A program made the position numbers and the translations under genes. A stretch of 64,000 bases of DNA, taken from the NCBI GenBank assembly GCA_002104945.1, contig MCFH01000020.1, forward strand, positions 124,001 through 188,000, in the 5' to 3' direction. Source of the stretch: Piromyces finnis finn. Taxonomy: Eukaryota > Fungi > Neocallimastigomycota. The notes under the pieces were generated by a model that ran no database searches, was not told the DNA's origin, and saw nothing but the letters and a program-made list of their open reading frames with translations. Below, one piece after another: positions 5,575 to 16,996 of the stretch; position 1 is the stretch's first letter; each line of letters opens with the position of its first letter.

Positions 5575-7362
5575 ATGTTAGATAAAATAAATTGTACAAA
5601 TACTTATATAGTTAATTCAAAATATTATACTCCTTCTTTTTATACTTATTATTTAAATAATTATAATAAAGAAGAGAATATAAATGAATTATTATTTAGT
5701 ATAGAAGAAAATTTACATAAATTAAGTATTAAAATTCAAAACTATCATATTTTTATTCAAGGTTTATATAATTTATTACAAAATTGTAATTTTGTAGTAA
5801 AATTCGATTTAAATAATCTTATAGGAAATAATAAAATCGATATTATAAATTTTAATTATATATTTTTATTAAATAATAATACCGCTTATTACTTTAATTT
5901 TAATACTGTTGAAAATTTAATAAAAAGTAACCAATTAATACCTTATCTTTATAATATCAAAAAAGAAATACCAAATCAAGCTAAATTTTTTAATAATAAT
6001 CACACAGCTAATTTAAAGTTAGTTGAAAATTATAAAATTAATACAACACCACAGTCAACTAATACATCCCTTATATCTTATCCTAATTTAAGTAAACAAA
6101 TATTTGAAACCGGAAAAATGAGAAATAATTATCTCTGTAAAAGAACTTCTTCAATAAAGAGAAATAGAAAGAGTAAGGAAAAAATGTTATTAAGAAAAAG
6201 AGAAAGCTTACATTATTTTACTGATTCGGAGCTTTTCATTGAAAGAAAGAGAGAAAATAGCAAAAAAAGTTCTATGAAGAATTCTTCTAAAGGTGATAAC
6301 TTAACACAAAAGACGTATAAAAGAAGTAATAGTAATCATGGAAATTTTAAAAGATTGAATAATGAGATTATATCAAAATATTATCTTTATCAAAAGAAAA
6401 AAGAGCAATTGAGTAATTTAATTAATCAATCTTGTGAGGTCATTGAAAAATCTGATAACCAAATATTTCAACCTGAAAAAATAAAAAAAATATTTAAAGG
6501 AAAATATATAAAGAACTTGTGTCAAAAAATCAATATTTTCCAGAATAATTTAAGAGATTATTGTAATAATGAAAATTATGAATTTAAATTAGATCAAGGT
6601 CATAAAATTTGGAATTTTAGTTTAAAAAGTCCAAAGTCCATATCAATAAATCAACTTTGTAAGAAAAAGTTATCAAATAATTCCTCTCTATCTCAAAATA
6701 ACTCAAATGAAAAACCTATTAATATATCCAATGAATTATTGAAGTCAAAAGTTGATATTATCCCAACAATTCAAACAACCCCTATAAACATTGAATTCCA
6801 AATTAATAAGAATAACCTTTATTTAAAATCGGAATTAAATAAATCTTTACAGGCATTGAAGAGAACAACCTTGTCAGAAAATAAGAAAAACAATGAAGAA
6901 AATTACCTAGAAAAAGATAATAAACCAAGTTCAAATCCAGTAAATAATATTATTGAGAAGTCAAGTGTACTTCAATCTAGTGAAGTTGCTTCATTAGAAA
7001 ATGCTAATCCAGTAATTACTAATTCTAGAAGAAATAAAAGAACAAAACATAATCGTTCTTCTGCTGTTTGTTTATCATCAAATGATATCAAAGGTATTTT
7101 GAATGAAACTAAACGTAATGATACAACACCAAATAATTCAGAAGATAAAGAACAAAAATCAACTCATCAAAAATTTTCTAAAGAGCAATTAGAGAGAAGA
7201 AAATTATTATCAAGAGATAATTATCATCCTTCTCTTACAACATTAAATTCTACTCAATTTTGTTATAACAAATATTATCCTTCTATTAGTCTACCATCAA
7301 TTCAAAGAAGTTCACAATTTTTACAACAACAATGGATAAACAATAGACGCTTAAATGTTTAA
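5575..7362 (+). CDS. Hypothetical N/K/S-rich protein, 595 aa, apparently single exon
   Basis: A 1.8-kb open frame is unlikely by chance in DNA this AT-rich. No recognisable domain. Confidence 0.65.
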   Translation: MLDKINCTNTYIVNSKYYTPSFYTYYLNNYNKEENINELLFSIEENLHKLSIKIQNYHIFIQGLYNLLQNCNFVVKFDLNNLIGNNKIDIINFNYIFLLNNNTAYYFNFNTVENLIKSNQLIPYLYNIKKEIPNQAKFFNNNHTANLKLVENYKINTTPQSTNTSLISYPNLSKQIFETGKMRNNYLCKRTSSIKRNRKSKEKMLLRKRESLHYFTDSELFIERKRENSKKSSMKNSSKGDNLTQKTYKRSNSNHGNFKRLNNEIISKYYLYQKKKEQLSNLINQSCEVIEKSDNQIFQPEKIKKIFKGKYIKNLCQKINIFQNNLRDYCNNENYEFKLDQGHKIWNFSLKSPKSISINQLCKKKLSNNSSLSQNNSNEKPINISNELLKSKVDIIPTIQTTPINIEFQINKNNLYLKSELNKSLQALKRTTLSENKKNNEENYLEKDNKPSSNPVNNIIEKSSVLQSSEVASLENANPVITNSRRNKRTKHNRSSAVCLSSNDIKGILNETKRNDTTPNNSEDKEQKSTHQKFSKEQLERRKLLSRDNYHPSLTTLNSTQFCYNKYYPSISLPSIQRSSQFLQQQWINNRRLNV

Positions 7363-8052
7363 TTTTATTTTAAAATGCAAATATTATTAAAATAAGATTT
7401 TTATTGGTGGCCTAATAATAAACAATATATTAACAATTATCATATCTTATTCCTTTTAAATAAATTAAAAAAAAAAAAAAAATAAATAAATAAAAAATTT
7501 AATATACAAAATATTATGAATAAATTATATTTTGTTTATTTTATTTATTTATTCCTATTTTTTTTAGTAATAATTTTAAAATATTTTATATCTTTTACTT
7601 TTAGAAAAGAATAAAATATATATAAATTATGTATTTTTTATATCCATAAATGATCTTTTTTTTTTTTTCAAGAAACAAACATTCTTATTTACAACATATT
7701 TTTATTAAACCATTTTTCTACATTAACTTTTTTTTTTTTTTTTTTTTTTTTTTATTATTATTATTATCATTAGTATTATAGTAAAATAATTTAAAAACAA
7801 AAACAAAAAACATATAGTTATTAATTACCAATATCAATAAAATTAACTATTACATAAAAGTAAAAAAAATACTATATTTTTTTTTTTTTTCTTTTTTTTC
7901 AAAATAATTATTTAAATAGAAAAATATTACTTTATTTCTATCTTGTCTTTATTAAAACCCATCAATCCATCAATTAAATAAAATATAAAATAAATAATAA
8001 AAAATCGAATAAAAAAAAAAAAAGGTTTTGAAAATAGTTTTTGTAATTTTTA

Positions 8053-11000
8053 TTATACAAATTCCCAAACTCTGTCACCTTGATCTAAATAATCTTGAAT
8101 AAATAATAAAAAATTGTCTTCTATTGAATAATTTTGATCATTCATGTCATTCGAAGGGGTAGAAGGATTACTTTTATTATTTTCTTTTTTTTTGGTCTTA
8201 TTTTGTGGGATATCATCTTTTTGGTTGAATGTTTGATTTTTTTCTTCATTCTCTGAATCTTCTTCGTTATTTATCTCATCAATGAAATCTGAAAACTCTT
8301 TTAACGGAGAGGATGAACTTTGCATATTCTTACTATATATATAGGTTTCTTCTGGTGTGGCATTGGTTGTATTATTTTCTTTTGAATTTTCACTATTGGA
8401 TGAATACATTTCTCTTTTATTATTATTATTATTTATACATACTTCTTCTGGTTCGTTAGATGAATTATTCCTATCGGCTATAAGTAAATCTGAAATATTT
8501 GTGTTAGATAATGATGTGTTGGTTAATGATTTTATTATTAAATGATCATATTCATCATTATTATAATGATGATGAATTGATTCTTTATTTTGATCTAAAT
8601 CTTTACTGTTAATATCATCTTTGAAATCTTGTTCCATATTATCCTCAAATAATGGAAGATTATTATAGGAAGGTAGGGAAAAAGAGAGTTTAGAATTAGG
8701 GGAAGATATTGAAGGTGGAGAAGAATGAAATGAATTAGATACAAAGGATGATGAATTCATGTTTGGTGATAGTTCATTAAAGGTGGAGGATAAATGAATT
8801 TCTTCGGGGTTAAAAATAGTTTGATTAGGAAGCTCATCACTTAATGTTATTAAATCTTTTTTTCCTCTTTTTTCCTCATTATCGGAGGAACAGCTAAATA
8901 TTAATGGACTTTGAATGGTATTTTCTTTTTTCAATTGAATTAAATCCATTGATTGACTAGGACTAAGACTAGGACTAGGACTAGATAATAATAAAAATTT
9001 TTGATCATGTTTAGTTGTTCCTGGAATCACGGAGGAAAGATCACTATTATATTCATCAATTATAGAAATCTTTGATGTAGAATTAGTACTTGTGATTACA
9101 TTAGAACTACTACTAGCTGCTTCAACATCTTCTAGTGTGGGAAAATTATTTTCTTGTGGAATGGGAATAGAAAAATGCTTATCGTAGTCTTCTTCAAAAT
9201 TATGAGAAGAAAGTAATGTCTCTTCTTCTGAATCGTTACCATTCAATTCTTTTATTGTCAATGATAATGAAGAAGGAAGAGTGGAGGTAGATAATAATGG
9301 ACTAGCTAATTTAGAATTTTCATATAAATCATTTAAATTACTAATAGTTTCATTTTTCCTTGATAAACTAGAATCAAAAGTGAAATCTTTTTCTTTTCCT
9401 TTATTTTTTATTTCTTGTTTTGGAAAAGTATCATTATTATTATTACTATATTTTTCTTTTTCTTTACTTAACTTTAACCCTTTTTTATCCTTTTTATTTT
9501 CTTCCTTACTCATTGCTTTTTCCATTTCTATTTCTTTAAAATCAACTAGATCTTTAATTAACACCTTTTTTCCTTCTTCACTTTTATCTTCATTTTTCAT
9601 TTCATGTATTATGTTTTCATGTTTAATTTCTTTCCAGTTAATAAAATTTTCAAGTAAAAATTCATTATTAAGGTTTTCTTTATTGTTTTCTTCTTCTCTA
9701 TTTTCATTTTCTTGCTTAATTATTTTCCAATTAAAACAATCGTTAATTAATATCTCATTGTTGAATTCTATTTTTTTATTTTTAGTTTCATCATCATTTT
9801 CAATTTCATTTGAATTTATTTCTTCACTCATTTCATCTTCTTTTTTAACTTTTTTCCAATCAAATAAATTTTGGATTAACATTTCATTGTCAAAGTTCTC
9901 TTTTAAAGCTTCATTTATTTCATTTTCTTTTTTAATTTTTTCTAAATCAATAAAGTGTTTATTAATTATGTCGCTAACATTATTTATGGTATATCTTTTT
10001 AATTGTTTTTGATTTTCATTGATTTCTATTCTATCATCATTACTATTACTTTTTTTATTTATTATCTCTCCTTCAGTTTTTATTTCTTTCCAATTTAAAA
10101 TTTTATTTAAAATTACTTCATCACTATTTTCCATAGCGTTTTGATCCTTCCTCATTGTTGAAACATCCTTATTTTCATTAATGTCACTGGGGTCATTTAA
10201 TATAGAATACCCTTTTTTTATTTTTCTTAATGTTAATAATTTTCTGATAATATCTTCGTTTTTTATTTCTTCTTCATTTTTTTTAGAAATATACTTTTCA
10301 TCATATTGAGTATTCTCCTCTTTTTCAGTTTCCTCTACATTTTTTATTATTTTTTTACTTTTTAAATTAATTAATTTTATATTATTGTTATTATCCAGAG
10401 ATCCAGATTCATTATTTTGTAAAGGACTATTTTTTGTATTATTTAAATTTCTTCTATCAGTATCATTCATATTAGTAATATTTATATCTTTATTTATTTT
10501 TTTATTTTTTTGTTCATTCGAAATTTTATCTTCATTTAATAATTTATTACTATTATGTTTATTGTTTGAATATATCATTGTATTACTTTCATTTAATAGA
10601 GATAATGACATTCTTCTTCTTTTAATTCTATGTACATTATTTATCATATGAATTTTTTTTCTTTTCCTTATTTCATTTTCTGTATTTCTAATGCTTTTTC
10701 TATTTTTAAAATAGTTCTGTAAAAATTCAATTAATTGCTTCTTTAATATAAAATTAAAGTCTTCTAGATCTTGGACACTGATTTTTTTTAAATTTTCTTT
10801 TATAATTACATTTAAAAGTTATATTTAATATAAAATATTATTTAATTTTTTAGAATAAAAAATATAAAAATAAATAAGATAGTATTTTATTTTCAAAAAT
10901 TTAAATTTTTTTTTTTTTTTTACCTGTCACAAATTGATAAATATAACTAGCAACAATATGTTTACATACTAATTTAGTATTATTCCATATATATACCTAA

Positions 11001-14000
11001 TTATAAAATATATTTAGAGTATTATAATTATTAAATTATTTTCTAATTCATTAATATTATGTTTTATAATATATTATATAATTACTTACCATACAAGAAC
11101 ATTTATAGGTTGACTGATGTTGTTGGTCATTCATATTTATTTGAGTATAATAATATTCATTTTCATAATATTTCACATTTAATAATTCTATCATAATATA
11201 TTAATAATATTATATCAATATTTTATCAAAAATTTGATTAGCAGGGTAATAATTTGATATTATATATTTATATTTATAAATACCATTTACGATGCTATTT
11301 AGTGAAGAATAAGGAATATATTTCGACAGAATTTGATGTTTATTATATATTTGATCTATTATAGGTTTTAAAACTTTATTAACTTTTAATTGAATCTTAT
11401 AATTAACAATACTATCTTTATTATTGTTTAGAATATCTTCATAGTCATTATTTTCTTGATCTGAACAATAATTAAAAAAATAGGGAGATATCCATTTCGT
11501 TAAATCATCACTATTATCATCTATTTTTCTTTTTTTAATATAGAAATTATTCTTGTTTTTGGTTGGAAGAATCTAGATTCATACGTTGTAAACATTATAT
11601 ATTATATATTATATATAATATAAATTATTATTGGAATTGATAATTAAACAAAACTTTTAAATTTTTTAACTACTTACTACTTACATTATTAATTAAATAA
11701 TAAAAGATTCCTTCGAAAATAATTCTTTTAGCTTTTTTTTTTTTACTATTAGTTATATTGCTAATGAATTTGCTCAAATTAAGTTTGTCTATTAATTTCA
11801 TGCTAACAGATGTCGATTTCTGATTTTTTTTCTGTTTTATATCAAAAATAGTTATATTTTTTTCTTGTTCTTCTTTTGAAATTTTAGAATTGTAAAATTG
11901 AAATATTGAATTAGTTTTATCGATTGAATAAGATAATTTCTCCATTAACAAGTCTTGAATTTTTTGTTTTAAAATTTTTTGATTTGATAAATCATTTTTA
12001 TTAATATTCATTTCTTTTGGAACAAGATTTTTGAAAAAAAAATGATATGGTTGTAATTCTAACAAGGATGAATTTTTTAAAAAAAGGAATAGAGGATCTT
12101 TTGATAATTTATGACATGTTTCATAAATTCTATAGAGTTCGGTAGTTTTCAAAATATCTACTTTATCATTACCGTTCTTATTATGTAAGAGAATTTGTTG
12201 TTGAATATATATATCTAATTTATTACTATCTGTTAAATTTATATTTTTTAATTTATAATAAAGTAATTTATCCAAAGTTAATTGTCCTCCAACGGCTTCA
12301 ATAATATCACAACGATTAACAACTCCATTTTTTAAAAATTTATTTTTCAATAAATCATTAATTTTTTCTGCAAATCCATTTGTTGTTATTATTTGATTTG
12401 TACTATAAGCAATTTGATGTTCCTTAAAAATATCGAAACCCCAAAAAGCATTTAACTTATTTAGAAAGGAAATAATTTTGTGAAGCTTAGATGGTGGTAA
12501 TTGAAATTCATTAGATAACATAGATACATTATCATTTTTTAGAGATGATTCAAAAAGAGTCTTTTGGCTATCAACTATTTCATTTGAATTAACGTTTAAA
12601 TATGTATTAATATTACCATCAGTATTGTATGCTGTTTTTAATTTGTTAAATTCTTCAAATTCATTAGTTTGCATCCTATAATTACTTGAGACTAAATGAA
12701 TAAAATTTGATATACTCCAATCTTTTTCATAAAGCTTTAATTTGAATGCTATTACAAGCAACAACTTCTGAGACGAGGTTATTTTTAAATCATCTAATAG
12801 TCTATAAAATAAACTAGCTAAATGGAATTTACAAAGAAATGGTTTCATATTTGCATTTCTAACTGCTTCCAGTGTTTTCTTTTCATGATCAATGATAACT
12901 ATTGGTTTCCATGATGATACTGAATTATTTATTTTTGGGCCTTTTAAGTTTTGTGTAATATTTAAATATTCGTTAATTTTTGTTTCTAATTCCATAGAAA
13001 GGTGAGAATAATAATGAAAATTTGTATTTTTAATACTTTGAATGTGACATTTATTAAATTTAAGAAAACCTTTTGAATAATATATGTATTGTTGTGAATG
13101 AGAGCAAAATATATTTTTACAGGGTATATTATATTTTACAATATCTAAAAATATTCTTATACTTTCTTTTTTGTTAACTGTCAATGAAGAAAAAAGAAAG
13201 GCAACAGGAAAAAATGATTTTGAATATTTGGATTTTGTTACGATTGTTGTAATAGAAATTTTTGGTATAGATATCAATGAAAAATAGGTTGTATCTAATA
13301 GAATTTTATTAAGCAATAAAAGTTAATATATAGTTTAATATTTTAAAATATATAATTCTTAATAATCTCATAATAATTTTATATAGTATTTTATCTAAAA
13401 AAATTCAATTAAAATTATTATTACCTAATGATATACAAGAAACATCGTATACAAATTTGAGAAGATTATAATCACTAAGAATTAGCATAAATTCATCTTT
13501 ATCGGACATTTGTTTATCATTTATTTTATTTTCATAATAATAAAATATATTATCATTATCTAAAAGTTTTCTAATAAGTAGTATTTCGTAATTTTTCTTC
13601 CTCATTTTTTTTGATAGCTTATTTTTTGATACAATTTCAATGATTCTTTTATCTTTTATTGAATAAAATATATATGGTATATAATTATCCATAAAATATT
13701 TATATGTATGAACAAAACTAACTACAGCTGTATTTACGTTACTAATAATTGGGATTGTAGGTAAAACATTATTTATAAGGACAGTCTCTTTATGAGTTGA
13801 ATTATCATCTATTTTTTCTTTAATTATATTATCTATTACAACTTTTAAATAATAATTAATATATATATAATAATATTAGAATGTAATAAAATAATAATAT
13901 AAAGAAAATTTTTATTTTATTGATGGTAAAATTACTTAATGATGGCTGACTAATTGAATCCAAACTTGAATTATATAAAAAATTAAATATTATAAAGTAA

Positions 14001-15049
14001 AATAAATTATTAACATTGAAAATAATAATATTAAATATATAAATATTTATTTTACTTTAAGTCTTTTATAGAATATTCTATAGGTTTATGAAAATTCACT
14101 GAAAAACTTATTTCTGTAATATCAATGTTACTTAAATAAACATCAAAAGAAATAACTTCGTTGCATTTATGTTTCTGAAATTCTTTATAATGCTGTTTAA
14201 CATAATCTTTATTTGAAAAATTACATTTTTCAGAACATTTACCAATTTCTCCACATTCTCTTTGACATAAATTATTTCCTGAGCATCTTATCTTATTATT
14301 TTATTATATTATAAAAATAAAGTCAATTGCATTTGTTTTGCATATAAAATATTTTAATAAAATCAAAACAAAAATAAAGACATTAATTTATTATAATTAT
14401 TGCTATTAATTTTTTATTTTTTATTATATCTAAATTATTTATTAAATATAATTATAATTACAAAAAAACAACCTTCCATGAATAAACCTTAATGTCTTTT
14501 TTTTTTTTAATTTTATTATACTTAAGCTTTTCTATTCCCCAATTTGTCAGTTGATATTCATCATCCAGACGATTTGTTGAACACAGTACACTATTTTTTC
14601 TTAACCAATTACTATACTTATATGCAGTATTGCATTTCTTTTTTTATTTTATTTTTATTATATTATAAACCATTAAAAATAACAAAATATTTAATAAATT
14701 AAGTTTATTAAATATATTATAATATTGTATTTACGAGAACTAATTATATATTGAAAATATTTTATTATTATCACTATTATTATAAAAACGATAAGACCTA
14801 AAAATGATAATACAATTTAAACACTACCTTAACAACAACATATTTTTTATTAATATATCTTTTAGTAGAGGATTTAGTAAAACTTATATTTTTAAATAAA
14901 GGGAAATTTTCAATAAAGTTTAAAACAGGATATCCAGTTGGTATTTGAAAAATATAATTATCATTTACAATTTTAAAATTATTGATTTTAAATTTGGAAA
15001 GTATTTGTTGATTAAAGAAATTATTATTTATATTACGAGGCTCACACAT
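8053..15049 (-). CDS. Multi-exon Mutator/MULE-type DDE transposase-derived protein: Cys-rich N-terminal Zn domain, DDE core, SWIM finger and long acidic repeat tail (>1,800 aa; 5' end uncertain)
   Basis: Phase-consistent GT-AG exons: (~14640)-14473, 14291-14056, 13964-13936, 13832-13425, 13294-11685, 11572-11284, 11187-11090, 10996-10924 and 10796-8053. Splicing creates SCISL-D-TTY (first Asp, codon split by an intron). Further motifs are PIVIIDHEKKTLEAV, FLCKFHL, TTNGFAEKINDLLKNK and the SWIM finger YKCSCM|VYIWNNTKLVCKHIVA. The last exon is in frame with the 864-aa ORF 10647-8053. Exons upstream of about 14640 could not be resolved. Confidence 0.8.
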
Positions 15050-15814
15050 TCCCTTAAAATGTAAATCTATTATTAACTATCTTTTTTTTTTTGTGTGAAA
15101 AATAAATATAATATATATCACTTTTTTATAAAGAAATATTTTTTTTTTTTAATTTTAATAAACCAATGAATGTTATGAAAATAAAAATGTTTACAAAAAA
15201 TAGTAAATATTCTAGATAACAGAAAAAATGTTACACAAATTTGAATATAATTTATTTTTTTATTGTCATATTCTTTATTTTTATATTTATACTCTTTCTT
15301 TTTCTTTTTAAACAATCAATACTATTTATGTTATCATTCATTTATACTTCATTTTTTTTTTTTTTTTGTAGCCATAGTTTTTTTTCATGCTTTAAAAAAA
15401 TATTTTTATTTGGTATAACTTTGCTACTGAATCTTAAATTTTATGTATCTTCTTTTTTTAGTTTATACTTTAATGTATCATTCATTAATTTCAAACCAAT
15501 CAATATTTTCGATCTGTATTACATTATAAATATGTATTAATTAAATTTAAAGTCTGAATAATATTAATTATCGACACATACATGAAATAATTAATATAAT
15601 GATAAAATATATTTCTCAATATATAAATGAAATGAAATATAAATATATTATAATATATTATTATAAACAATAAATTAATATATATTATTAATTAATTTTT
15701 ATTTATATCTTTTCTTTTTTCTTTTTTTCTTTTAACAATTAATAATTATTAAATAAATAATAATTAGAAAATTAAATAACTCCAATAACAAATAATTAAT
15801 CATAAGGCAATAAA

Positions 15815-16996
15815 ATGAATTACCAAGCTCTTATTGAAGCCTTCTCAAAAGTAGATTACACTAATATCTATTTTATTTTATCTGCTAGTTCCATTATTTT
15901 CAATCCATTATTCTGGAACATTGTTGCAAGAAATGGTTAGTTTTTTTTATTTAAAGAAAATATTTTATATATGTATATTTATTTAATAATTAATAATTTT
16001 AAATAAAATTTAAATTGCATTACATATTTTTGAATTGAATATACAACTTTTTTTTTTTTTGTGAAAATTCTATCTTAATATAAAAAGAATATAGAAACAA
16101 GACTTTAACCAAGATTTTCAAAAGTCCAAAGAATGGATGTTACTTTTTAGCTTTCGTTATTTTCACTCTTGGTATTGTTCGTGATTTATTGTAAATATCT
16201 ATTATTTATATTTTTTTTTCTTAATACTATATAAAAATTATCAATGTTAAAATTATTATTTATATTCATTTAATAATAAAATTTTAATAATATCTAGATT
16301 TGGAAAGGCCATTCAAAGTGATAATGAATGCAAATTATTTGATAGTATTGGTATTAAAGTTATTGGTTATATTTGTTTAGCAGTTGGCGGTATTTTAGTT
16401 TATTCTTCTATGTACACTTTAGGTATTATTGGTACCTACTTAGGTAAGTTTAATTTTAATTTTTTAAATGCTTAGCTTTTTTTTTAAATTCATTTGCTAT
16501 TTTTTATTAATTTTTTTAATATATCATATTATTTAGGTGATTACTTCGGAATTTTAATGGAAAAAAGAGTTACTGGTTTCCCATTCAACATTTGTGATAA
16601 TCCAATGTACAATGGTTCTACCTTAAATTTCTTAGGAACTGCTATTATGTAATAATATTAATAAATTTTTAAAACATAATTCTTTAATTTATAAATTAAA
16701 ATCGAATTAAAATAAAATAATAATAATTAATTGATATAGAGGAAAAAGTTGTGCCGGTATTGTTTTAACTATTATTGTTTGGATTGTTTATGAAGTAGCT
16801 TTAAGATTTGAAGGGTACATTTTCGAAAAATTTATTTATATCTATTATATTATTGTCAATTACAACAATTACTAATCTATTACAAAATTTAAATAATTAA
16901 AACAGTCCATTCACTAGTATGATATATGCTAACAGAGACAAGAAAGAAGTCAAGAAACCAACTGTTACTAAGCAAAAAAGTAAGAAAATCAATTAA
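15815..16996 (+). CDS. OPI3: Phospholipid N-methyltransferase (PEMT/Opi3), multi-exon
   Basis: Spliced translation [10 protein letters not shown]...[14 protein letters not shown]...[42 protein letters not shown]...EGPFTSMIY contains the canonical PEMT motifs. Confidence 0.93.

Follow-up and report, generated by a model that had tools for sequence, protein, structure and literature searches.

The window analysed here is a stretch of 64,000 nucleotides (nt) from the anaerobic gut fungus Piromyces finnis (assembly GCA_002104945.1, contig MCFH01000020.1, forward-strand positions 124,001 to 188,000). Its minus strand carries, between 15049 and 8053, a gene of 10 exons and 9 introns, whose predicted product has a Cys/His-rich N-terminal region, a core with the motifs of Mutator-type transposases, a SWIM zinc finger, and a long C-terminal tail. 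The exons were derived from a global alignment of the minus strand of the window with a metagenome contig (L002), along which conserved blocks alternate with diverged, indel-rich ones, and from a scripted check of the reading phases (Table 1). Spliced together, they total 5,883 nt, or 1,960 codons and a stop; none of them is interrupted by a stop, and the phases all agree. The introns are all of the GT-AG type, 91 to 190 nt long, and contain 6 to 15% GC, compared with 19 to 31% in the exons, at a locus whose base composition ranges from 10 to 28% G+C. Any of them, if retained, would bring in an early in-frame stop. A frame open for 536 codons has P ~2e-30 given the local base composition, and chance is therefore excluded.

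Table 1. Features of the locus, in window coordinates.
Feature	Position	Strand	Remarks
Exon 1	15049-14828	-	74 codons; first ATG after in-frame stop at 15079
Exon 2	14637-14473	-	55 codons
Exon 3	14291-14056	-	Cys/His-rich module; dN/dS 0.10
Exon 4	13964-13936	-	29-nt microexon
Exon 5	13841-13425	-	final base G (13425) opens the codon of the first catalytic Asp
Exon 6	13294-11685	-	transposase-like core; remainder of D1, D2, CxxH, E
Exon 7	11572-11284	-	KKRK basic patch
Exon 8	11187-11090	-	ends in first SWIM half (CSCM; Cys codons 11101-11099, 11095-11093)
Exon 9	10996-10924	-	second SWIM half (C 10966-10964, H 10960-10958)
Exon 10	10796-8053	-	913-aa N/K/E/S-rich tail and stop; dN/dS 0.42
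D1	13425 and 13294-13293	-	split codon; kept in L002 and Neocallimastix
D2	12890-12888	-	invariant in every orthologue covering the position
CxxH	Cys 12833-12831, His 12824-12822	-	invariant in every orthologue covering the position
Glu (E)	12368-12366	-	invariant in every orthologue covering the position
SWIM CxC	11101-11093	-	end of exon 8
SWIM CxH	10966-10958	-	exon 9
Divergent intergenic region	15050-15814		between the gene and PEMT/OPI3
PEMT/OPI3 gene	15815-16652	+	ATG at 15815; multi-exon; PF04191, E 1.9e-14; lies 765 bp from the gene in head-to-head orientation; collinear in L002
595-aa N/S/K-rich open reading frame	5575-7362	+	tail to tail with the gene; no Pfam match; conserved and collinear in L002 (608-aa frame)

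The initial annotation, made from the letters of the sequence alone, had joined three separately called open reading frames (ORFs; 8053-10647, 11670-13316, and 13405-13692) and further exons through eight introns. The ORFs are present, and the GT-AG boundaries and consistent phases hold good, but the introns number nine, the difference being the microexon, which is required because exon 3 (phase 2) cannot otherwise join exon 5 in frame. A splice path omitting it was rejected, as the frame was broken. The microexon has the same length and the same splice sites in L002, and a 29-nt counterpart with matching phases lies in a Neocallimastix-type contig (L010). An acceptor for exon 10 at 10779/10778 was also rejected, the frame running into a stop. 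All comparable splice sites and phases recur in L002, and those covered by L010 recur there too. The splitting of the first catalytic Asp codon by an intron, likewise read from the sequence at the outset, is part of the model that emerged.

Public gene models provide further support for several junctions. A word-index search with the 548-amino-acid (aa) ORF returned one metagenome protein, P0001 (544 aa, 64% identity), whose 18-kb contig, L002, shows ORFs in the same succession as the window locus. In N. californiae, model P0005 (ORY23002.1, 860 aa) connects the equivalents of exons 5, 6, and 7 exactly as in our model, with the junction peptides ...IAM/DTTYF, across the split Asp codon, and ...YYLLNN/VIPT (slashes mark the junctions). 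Exon 6 is also joined to exon 7 in two further models, the partial ORX50647.1 of P. finnis (P0003, 237 aa) and P0004 of Pecoramyces, both of which use a donor inside exon 6 (GT 12161-12160) by which 159 codons (12161-11685) are skipped in frame. Because this stretch is open in three taxa, is conserved (57% identical to L002 in translation), and would be open by chance in one taxon with P ~2e-9, we regard it as coding in at least one isoform; the donor at 12161 may reflect alternative splicing (an 'exitron') instead of a plain intron. GenBank holds only fragments of the gene, of 237 aa and 805 aa, as 'hypothetical protein' models; two GenBank entries under the name P. finnis match stretches of the locus with full identity.

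The motifs of the predicted protein follow one another in the order LDTTYF...FPVAFLF; W(K/Q)PxVxID(H/Q)E, with CKFH 19 residues on; ITTNGFAExIN; and CxC-x11-CxH. The D(TTY)...D...CxxH...E signature that had been recognized in the sequence could be located residue by residue in exons 5 and 6, and the D, D, and E are present in Mutator order within one core domain. The C/DxxH motif is IDHEKKTLEAVRNANMKPFLCKFHL, with its Cys 19 residues after the second Asp (D2), and is invariant in three taxa. The first Asp (D1) and D2 are 135 aa apart, and D2 and the Glu (E) 174 aa apart. Among all 11-residue windows of exon 6, the most conserved is that of the E block, whose last residue is the catalytic Glu (10/11 invariant, compared with an overall invariant fraction of 40%), and the one over CxxH (9/11) shares second place with two others. 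The SWIM finger, CSCM/VYIWNNTKLVCKH, is split by intron 8, as had been noted, and the split is identical in L002 and L010; its assignment is at the level of the pattern.

Other Cys/His clusters flank or interrupt this core. Exon 3 has the pattern C-x5-C-x3-C-x5-C-x3-C...H-x6-H-x-C...H, and none of its counted metal-ligand-type residues (6 Cys and 3 His) varies among P. finnis, L002, and Neocallimastix L010, which makes it a candidate zinc-binding nucleic-acid-binding domain. Its start, SGNNxCxRECGEIG (IRCSGNNLCQRECGEIGKC), showed a weak likeness to the C-terminal zinc knuckle of LINE-1 ORF2p (IKKSGNNRCWRGCGEIG) in a profile search of the Protein Data Bank (PDB), at a nonsignificant E of 0.14. 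Between D1 and D2, a conserved insertion (13121-13002) with the pattern C-x4-C-x-H...C-H...H-x3-H could be an extra metal-binding element, which would be unexpected in a plain Mutator-like element (MULE) core. The KKRK patch of exon 7 is a possible nuclear localization signal.

We then have to ask whether such a gene belongs to a mobile element or to the host. The initial annotation had reported no terminal inverted repeats (TIRs) or target-site duplication and had proposed copy number, conservation of position, and selection as checks. Across 56.46 Mb of genome (232 contigs), searches with the core exon, and with two orthologue-derived profiles, found one locus. A scan of 7300-15900, run with no shuffle control, revealed no TIRs; the inverted repeats were only A/T-rich pairs of 70 to 81% complementarity, which we read as chance because the DNA is so A+T-rich. 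Neither the long TIRs nor the 8- to 11-bp target-site duplication expected of an autonomous MULE was found at the locus. L002 is collinear with the window from the PEMT/OPI3 side to the 595-aa ORF side, orthologues are present in Neocallimastix and Pecoramyces, intron positions are common to several genera, and the reading frames are open in three taxa. A search of metagenome contigs for related loci confirmed none. The sole PF04434 match of a six-frame genome scan (G000:C1:498919-498993) was below threshold, at 17.6 bits, and was discarded; the ORFs upstream of it, from a distance of ~1 kb onward, resemble a USO1/p115 gene when judged by eye, and no MULE-like gene is present in the 10 kb read on that side.

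Selection on the gene was measured as the ratio of nonsynonymous to synonymous substitution rates (dN/dS; Nei-Gojobori, NG86) relative to L002. Values were 0.05 to 0.45 and thus below 0.5 in every exon, with 0.31 in exon 6 and 0.19 to 0.45 in the SWIM exons. Exon 2 was the most constrained (0.046, with 89% aa identity to L002), and exon 1 was at 0.27 (70% aa identity). Exon 8 is 61 to 69% identical at the aa level to L010 and L002, and exon 9 is 74 to 75% identical in both. At the DNA level, exons match L002 at 72 to 86% identity and their gaps are multiples of three, and introns are 54 to 73% identical with frame-breaking gaps.

Taken at the level of sequence, every testable feature expected of a domesticated transposase is present here. 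Its gene structure, single copy, conserved position, shared introns, purifying selection, and conserved catalytic motifs support the proposal, already made in the initial annotation, of a host gene derived from a MULE. We think it likely that this is a host gene of the Neocallimastigomycota, descended from a Mutator-like transposase, no longer mobile, and encoding one protein of ~1,960 residues. The strongly constrained N-terminal Cys/His-rich region (exons 1 to 3) would probably be the nucleic-acid-binding part, followed by a putative core of RNase-H type that carries D, D, CxxH, and E (the end of exon 5 and exon 6), the SWIM zinc finger (exons 8/9), and a mostly acidic, low-complexity 913-aa C-terminal region with three short conserved motifs (exon 10). 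In such a protein, the zinc modules might bind specific DNA, the tail might be a docking region for partners, and a metal-binding DDE center might still cut or join DNA at host sites, as in Kluyveromyces lactis alpha3.

The Mutator ancestry itself we hold to be very probable, on the basis of motif order, language-model neighbors, and the structural neighbors of an orthologue model. In feature searches of the ESM-Atlas, the neighbors of the window protein were MULE and ZSWIM1-3 clusters (score 0.89, taken as a lead only), and those of orthologue P0001 were MULE/ZSWIM1-3 families (0.93, with 20 of 30 matches in the PF10551 set). The structures nearest to the Atlas model of P0001 (predicted local distance difference test [pLDDT] 0.46) belong to MULE, Transposase_mut, IS256, and Mutator clusters, with template modeling (TM) scores of 0.33 to 0.67 by row. 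This evidence is convergent and unconventional, in that no conventional E-value stands behind the ancestry.

Several results weigh against the reading as a whole. In searches run exon by exon with the window protein, Pfam returned no family at E<=10 on any exon, on any slice around the motifs, or on any orthologue. An exhaustive phmmer search of 1.84 billion representatives found four clusters, all from gut fungi, and no canonical MULE. The hhalign comparison of orthologue alignments with 17 bacterial IS256 transposases was not significant (P 0.25 to 0.47); its best local alignment paired D2..CxxH with D2..CxxH. AlphaFold2 gave a pLDDT of 34 for both the 537-aa exon and the 345-aa core, so that the fold is not confirmed, and the Atlas scores of 0.89 to 0.93 are attained by 4 to 10% of shuffled proteins. 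Both D1-D2 and D2-E spacings exceed those of typical MULEs, and the E is one residue further from TTN than in FAR1/MURA. Among public models, P0005 of N. californiae stops in intron 7, and P0007 (GenBank/eukprot) treats the tail as a protein in its own right, of 805 aa, whose start is an internal Met (10470).

When the word index of proteins was searched with the core exon, and with its alignment, only gut-fungal orthologues were returned; a profile search of PDB sequences gave only noise, and an Atlas fold search with the 345-aa AlphaFold2 model gave TM <= 0.26, a value that is meaningless at pLDDT 34. PF10551 had no match anywhere in the P. finnis genome, and neither had PF21056; the latter blank weighs little, because that profile matched no bacterial or archaeal control genome either. 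The gene is not classifiable as a Pfam MULE member as that model defines it.

If the gene model is right, whether the DDE center is still catalytic or is a purely structural remnant appears to us evenly poised. We lean slightly to catalysis because the E and CxxH blocks are among the most conserved in the core. An active domesticated Mutator-type recombinase making programmed breaks or rearrangements at host sites in the Neocallimastigomycota would go further, and we consider it doubtful; we know of no such process in this group. If it were true, the recombinase could serve, for example, in cell-type switching or genome defense, the zinc-knuckle N terminus would aim it, the long disordered tail would serve its regulation or the docking of partners, and it would stand as a fungal counterpart of K. 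lactis alpha3/Kat1, RAG1, and the ciliate PiggyMac.

A tentative alternative keeps the domesticated gene and makes its DDE center inert, so that the protein would be a DNA-binding regulator of transcription or chromatin, comparable to FHY3/FAR1. Folding and oligomerization would then be the role of the core and SWIM finger, and activation or recruitment that of the acidic tail. Most domesticated MULEs described to date are regulators, and a DNA-binding regulator would fit because the N-terminal zinc exons are more constrained still than the core (dN/dS 0.05 to 0.10, compared with 0.31) and the tail is long and acidic, its low complexity and short conserved motifs resembling a recruitment region. 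What this leaves to be accounted for is the retention, across genera with only ~50% overall identity, of all five catalytic-signature residues, which lie in the best-conserved blocks of the core.

It is also quite unlikely, in our view, that two genes are present, a transposase-like gene ending after the SWIM exons and a separate tail gene, as annotated. P0007 is such a tail-only model, and it is the only annotated protein that a word-index search with the tail returned; moreover, retention of intron 9 would lead to a stop after 8 codons, making a short isoform possible. However, exon 9 ends in phase 1, exon 10 begins directly after an AG, and the first 49 codons of exon 10 (10796-10648) precede any ATG, GTG, or TTG of that frame, the first possible start being at 10647. 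These codons nonetheless encode a peptide conserved in three taxa (ENLKKISVQDLEDFNF... versus ENIKKLNTQDIEDFNM...), with ENxKKxxxQDxEDFN kept in both L002 and L010. In both contigs, the tail peptide starts right at the conserved AG, with an exon 9 that ends in the matching phase 1, and P0007 leaves this block out. Because the gap between exons 9 and 10 is only 127 nt (6% GC), there is little space in it for a promoter and a 5' exon. The comparative evidence is thus good that, in three taxa, a single reading frame takes in both the SWIM exons and the tail.

The tail had been described at first as an acidic region of ~900 aa. The length (913 aa) and overall acidity (pI 5.0; D+E 169, K+R 128) stand, but the first ~200 residues are basic and only the remainder is acidic. 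Three blocks are conserved in all three taxa (10794-10708, 9306-9241, and 8112-8056), the C-terminal one being FLLFIQDYLDQGDRVWEFV. Five repeats of ~30 to 40 aa, centered on (L/F)xNWKEIKxE, lie at 10128-9502, and the tails of L002 and L010 have one to three motifs similar to the NWKEIK repeat. The tail of Neocallimastix is 1,498 aa long.

There is a slim chance that the gene has no transposase in its ancestry and is a lineage-specific gut-fungal protein with Mutator-like patterns by coincidence. The Pfam, phmmer, hhalign, and AlphaFold results set out above, as well as the scores of shuffled proteins, would all be expected in that case. A chance Atlas match is, however, unlikely to fall, for the window protein and for an orthologue, on the very family predicted beforehand from the motifs, and the independent structural neighbors are also MULE, IS256, and Mutator proteins. 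In addition, the motif order is right, a SWIM finger lies downstream as in MULEs, and the motifs are the most conserved blocks. Finally, an ordinary autonomous MULE, possibly still mobile, would explain the intact-looking catalytic signature and the SWIM finger but is scarcely tenable for a TIR-less gene with one copy in the genome, the same neighbors in another species, nine introns at conserved positions, and purifying selection.

Among known systems, the plant MULE-derived genes FHY3/FAR1 and MUSTANG resemble the gut-fungal gene in being TIR-less host genes under purifying selection, with a shared layout of N-terminal zinc-type DNA-binding region, MULE core, and C-terminal SWIM finger. They are recognized by the Pfam FAR1, MULE, and SWIM models, whereas the gut-fungal gene matches none of these, adds a tail after the SWIM finger (913 aa, or 1,498 aa in Neocallimastix), and keeps the full D/D/CxxH/E. 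Plant FHY3/FAR1-type genes also form large families (PMC8599713), in contrast to the single-copy gene described here.

Closer in kind are the fungal genes alpha3 of K. lactis and TBLA0D02000 of Tetrapisispora blattae, which are TIR-less, single-copy, MULE-like, and ~1,000 residues long (PMC4629796). Compared by description, they resemble the gut-fungal gene in being fungal, single-copy, TIR-less, and MULE-like. Since alpha3 is reported to act in mating-type switching (PMC4629796), it is a fungal precedent for a domesticated MULE in DNA rearrangement. Both genes are from Saccharomycetaceae, however, while the gut-fungal gene is from early-diverging fungi; they are detectably MULE-similar by ordinary search and have no long tail described, and the gut-fungal gene is not known from a mating locus.

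The animal MULE-derived ZSWIM1-3 proteins (PF21056/PF21600/PF04434) are language-model neighbors of the window protein as well as of its orthologue and share the layout of RNase-H-like core and SWIM finger; this relation is not based on alignment, and PF21056, as noted, is silent in the genome. With autonomous MULEs (MuDR MURA, Mutyl of Yarrowia, and Hop of Fusarium) and with IS256, the gene shares the order D, D, CxxH ~20 residues on, and TTN..E..N. It differs from these in having no TIRs, target-site duplication, or extra copies, and in its nine introns, its wider spacing, and its conserved Cys/His insertion between D1 and D2.

Regulators and programmed nucleases have repeatedly arisen from domesticated transposases. 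We found no description in the literature of a domesticated transposase gene of this kind in anaerobic gut fungi, which fits both the view in the initial annotation that none is known to have been described and the broken-up 'hypothetical protein' entries of GenBank. The gene would be a very divergent addition to the domesticated MULEs, and its corrected model is absent from public annotation. The genetics and life cycle of anaerobic gut fungi are poorly known, and here is a gene conserved in at least three of their genera, with its full catalytic signature kept, that is invisible to standard domain annotation. The corrected model offers a concrete candidate for nuclease and DNA-binding biochemistry, and the case is an example of extreme A+T bias concealing known families from profile searches.

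As to its surroundings, the gene had been placed head to head with OPI3 from the outset, an assignment that the PF04191 domain of the neighbor bears out. Two observations differ from the arrangement in P. finnis. The Neocallimastix-type orthologue L010 has an extra intron (1160-1345) within its exon 5 counterpart, and in L008 the tail is followed by an ORF (9819-10214) with an RNA_pol_Rpb1_5 domain, unlike the P. finnis neighbor. These two differences make it possible that introns were gained or lost, and that the neighbor changed, between gut-fungal genera.

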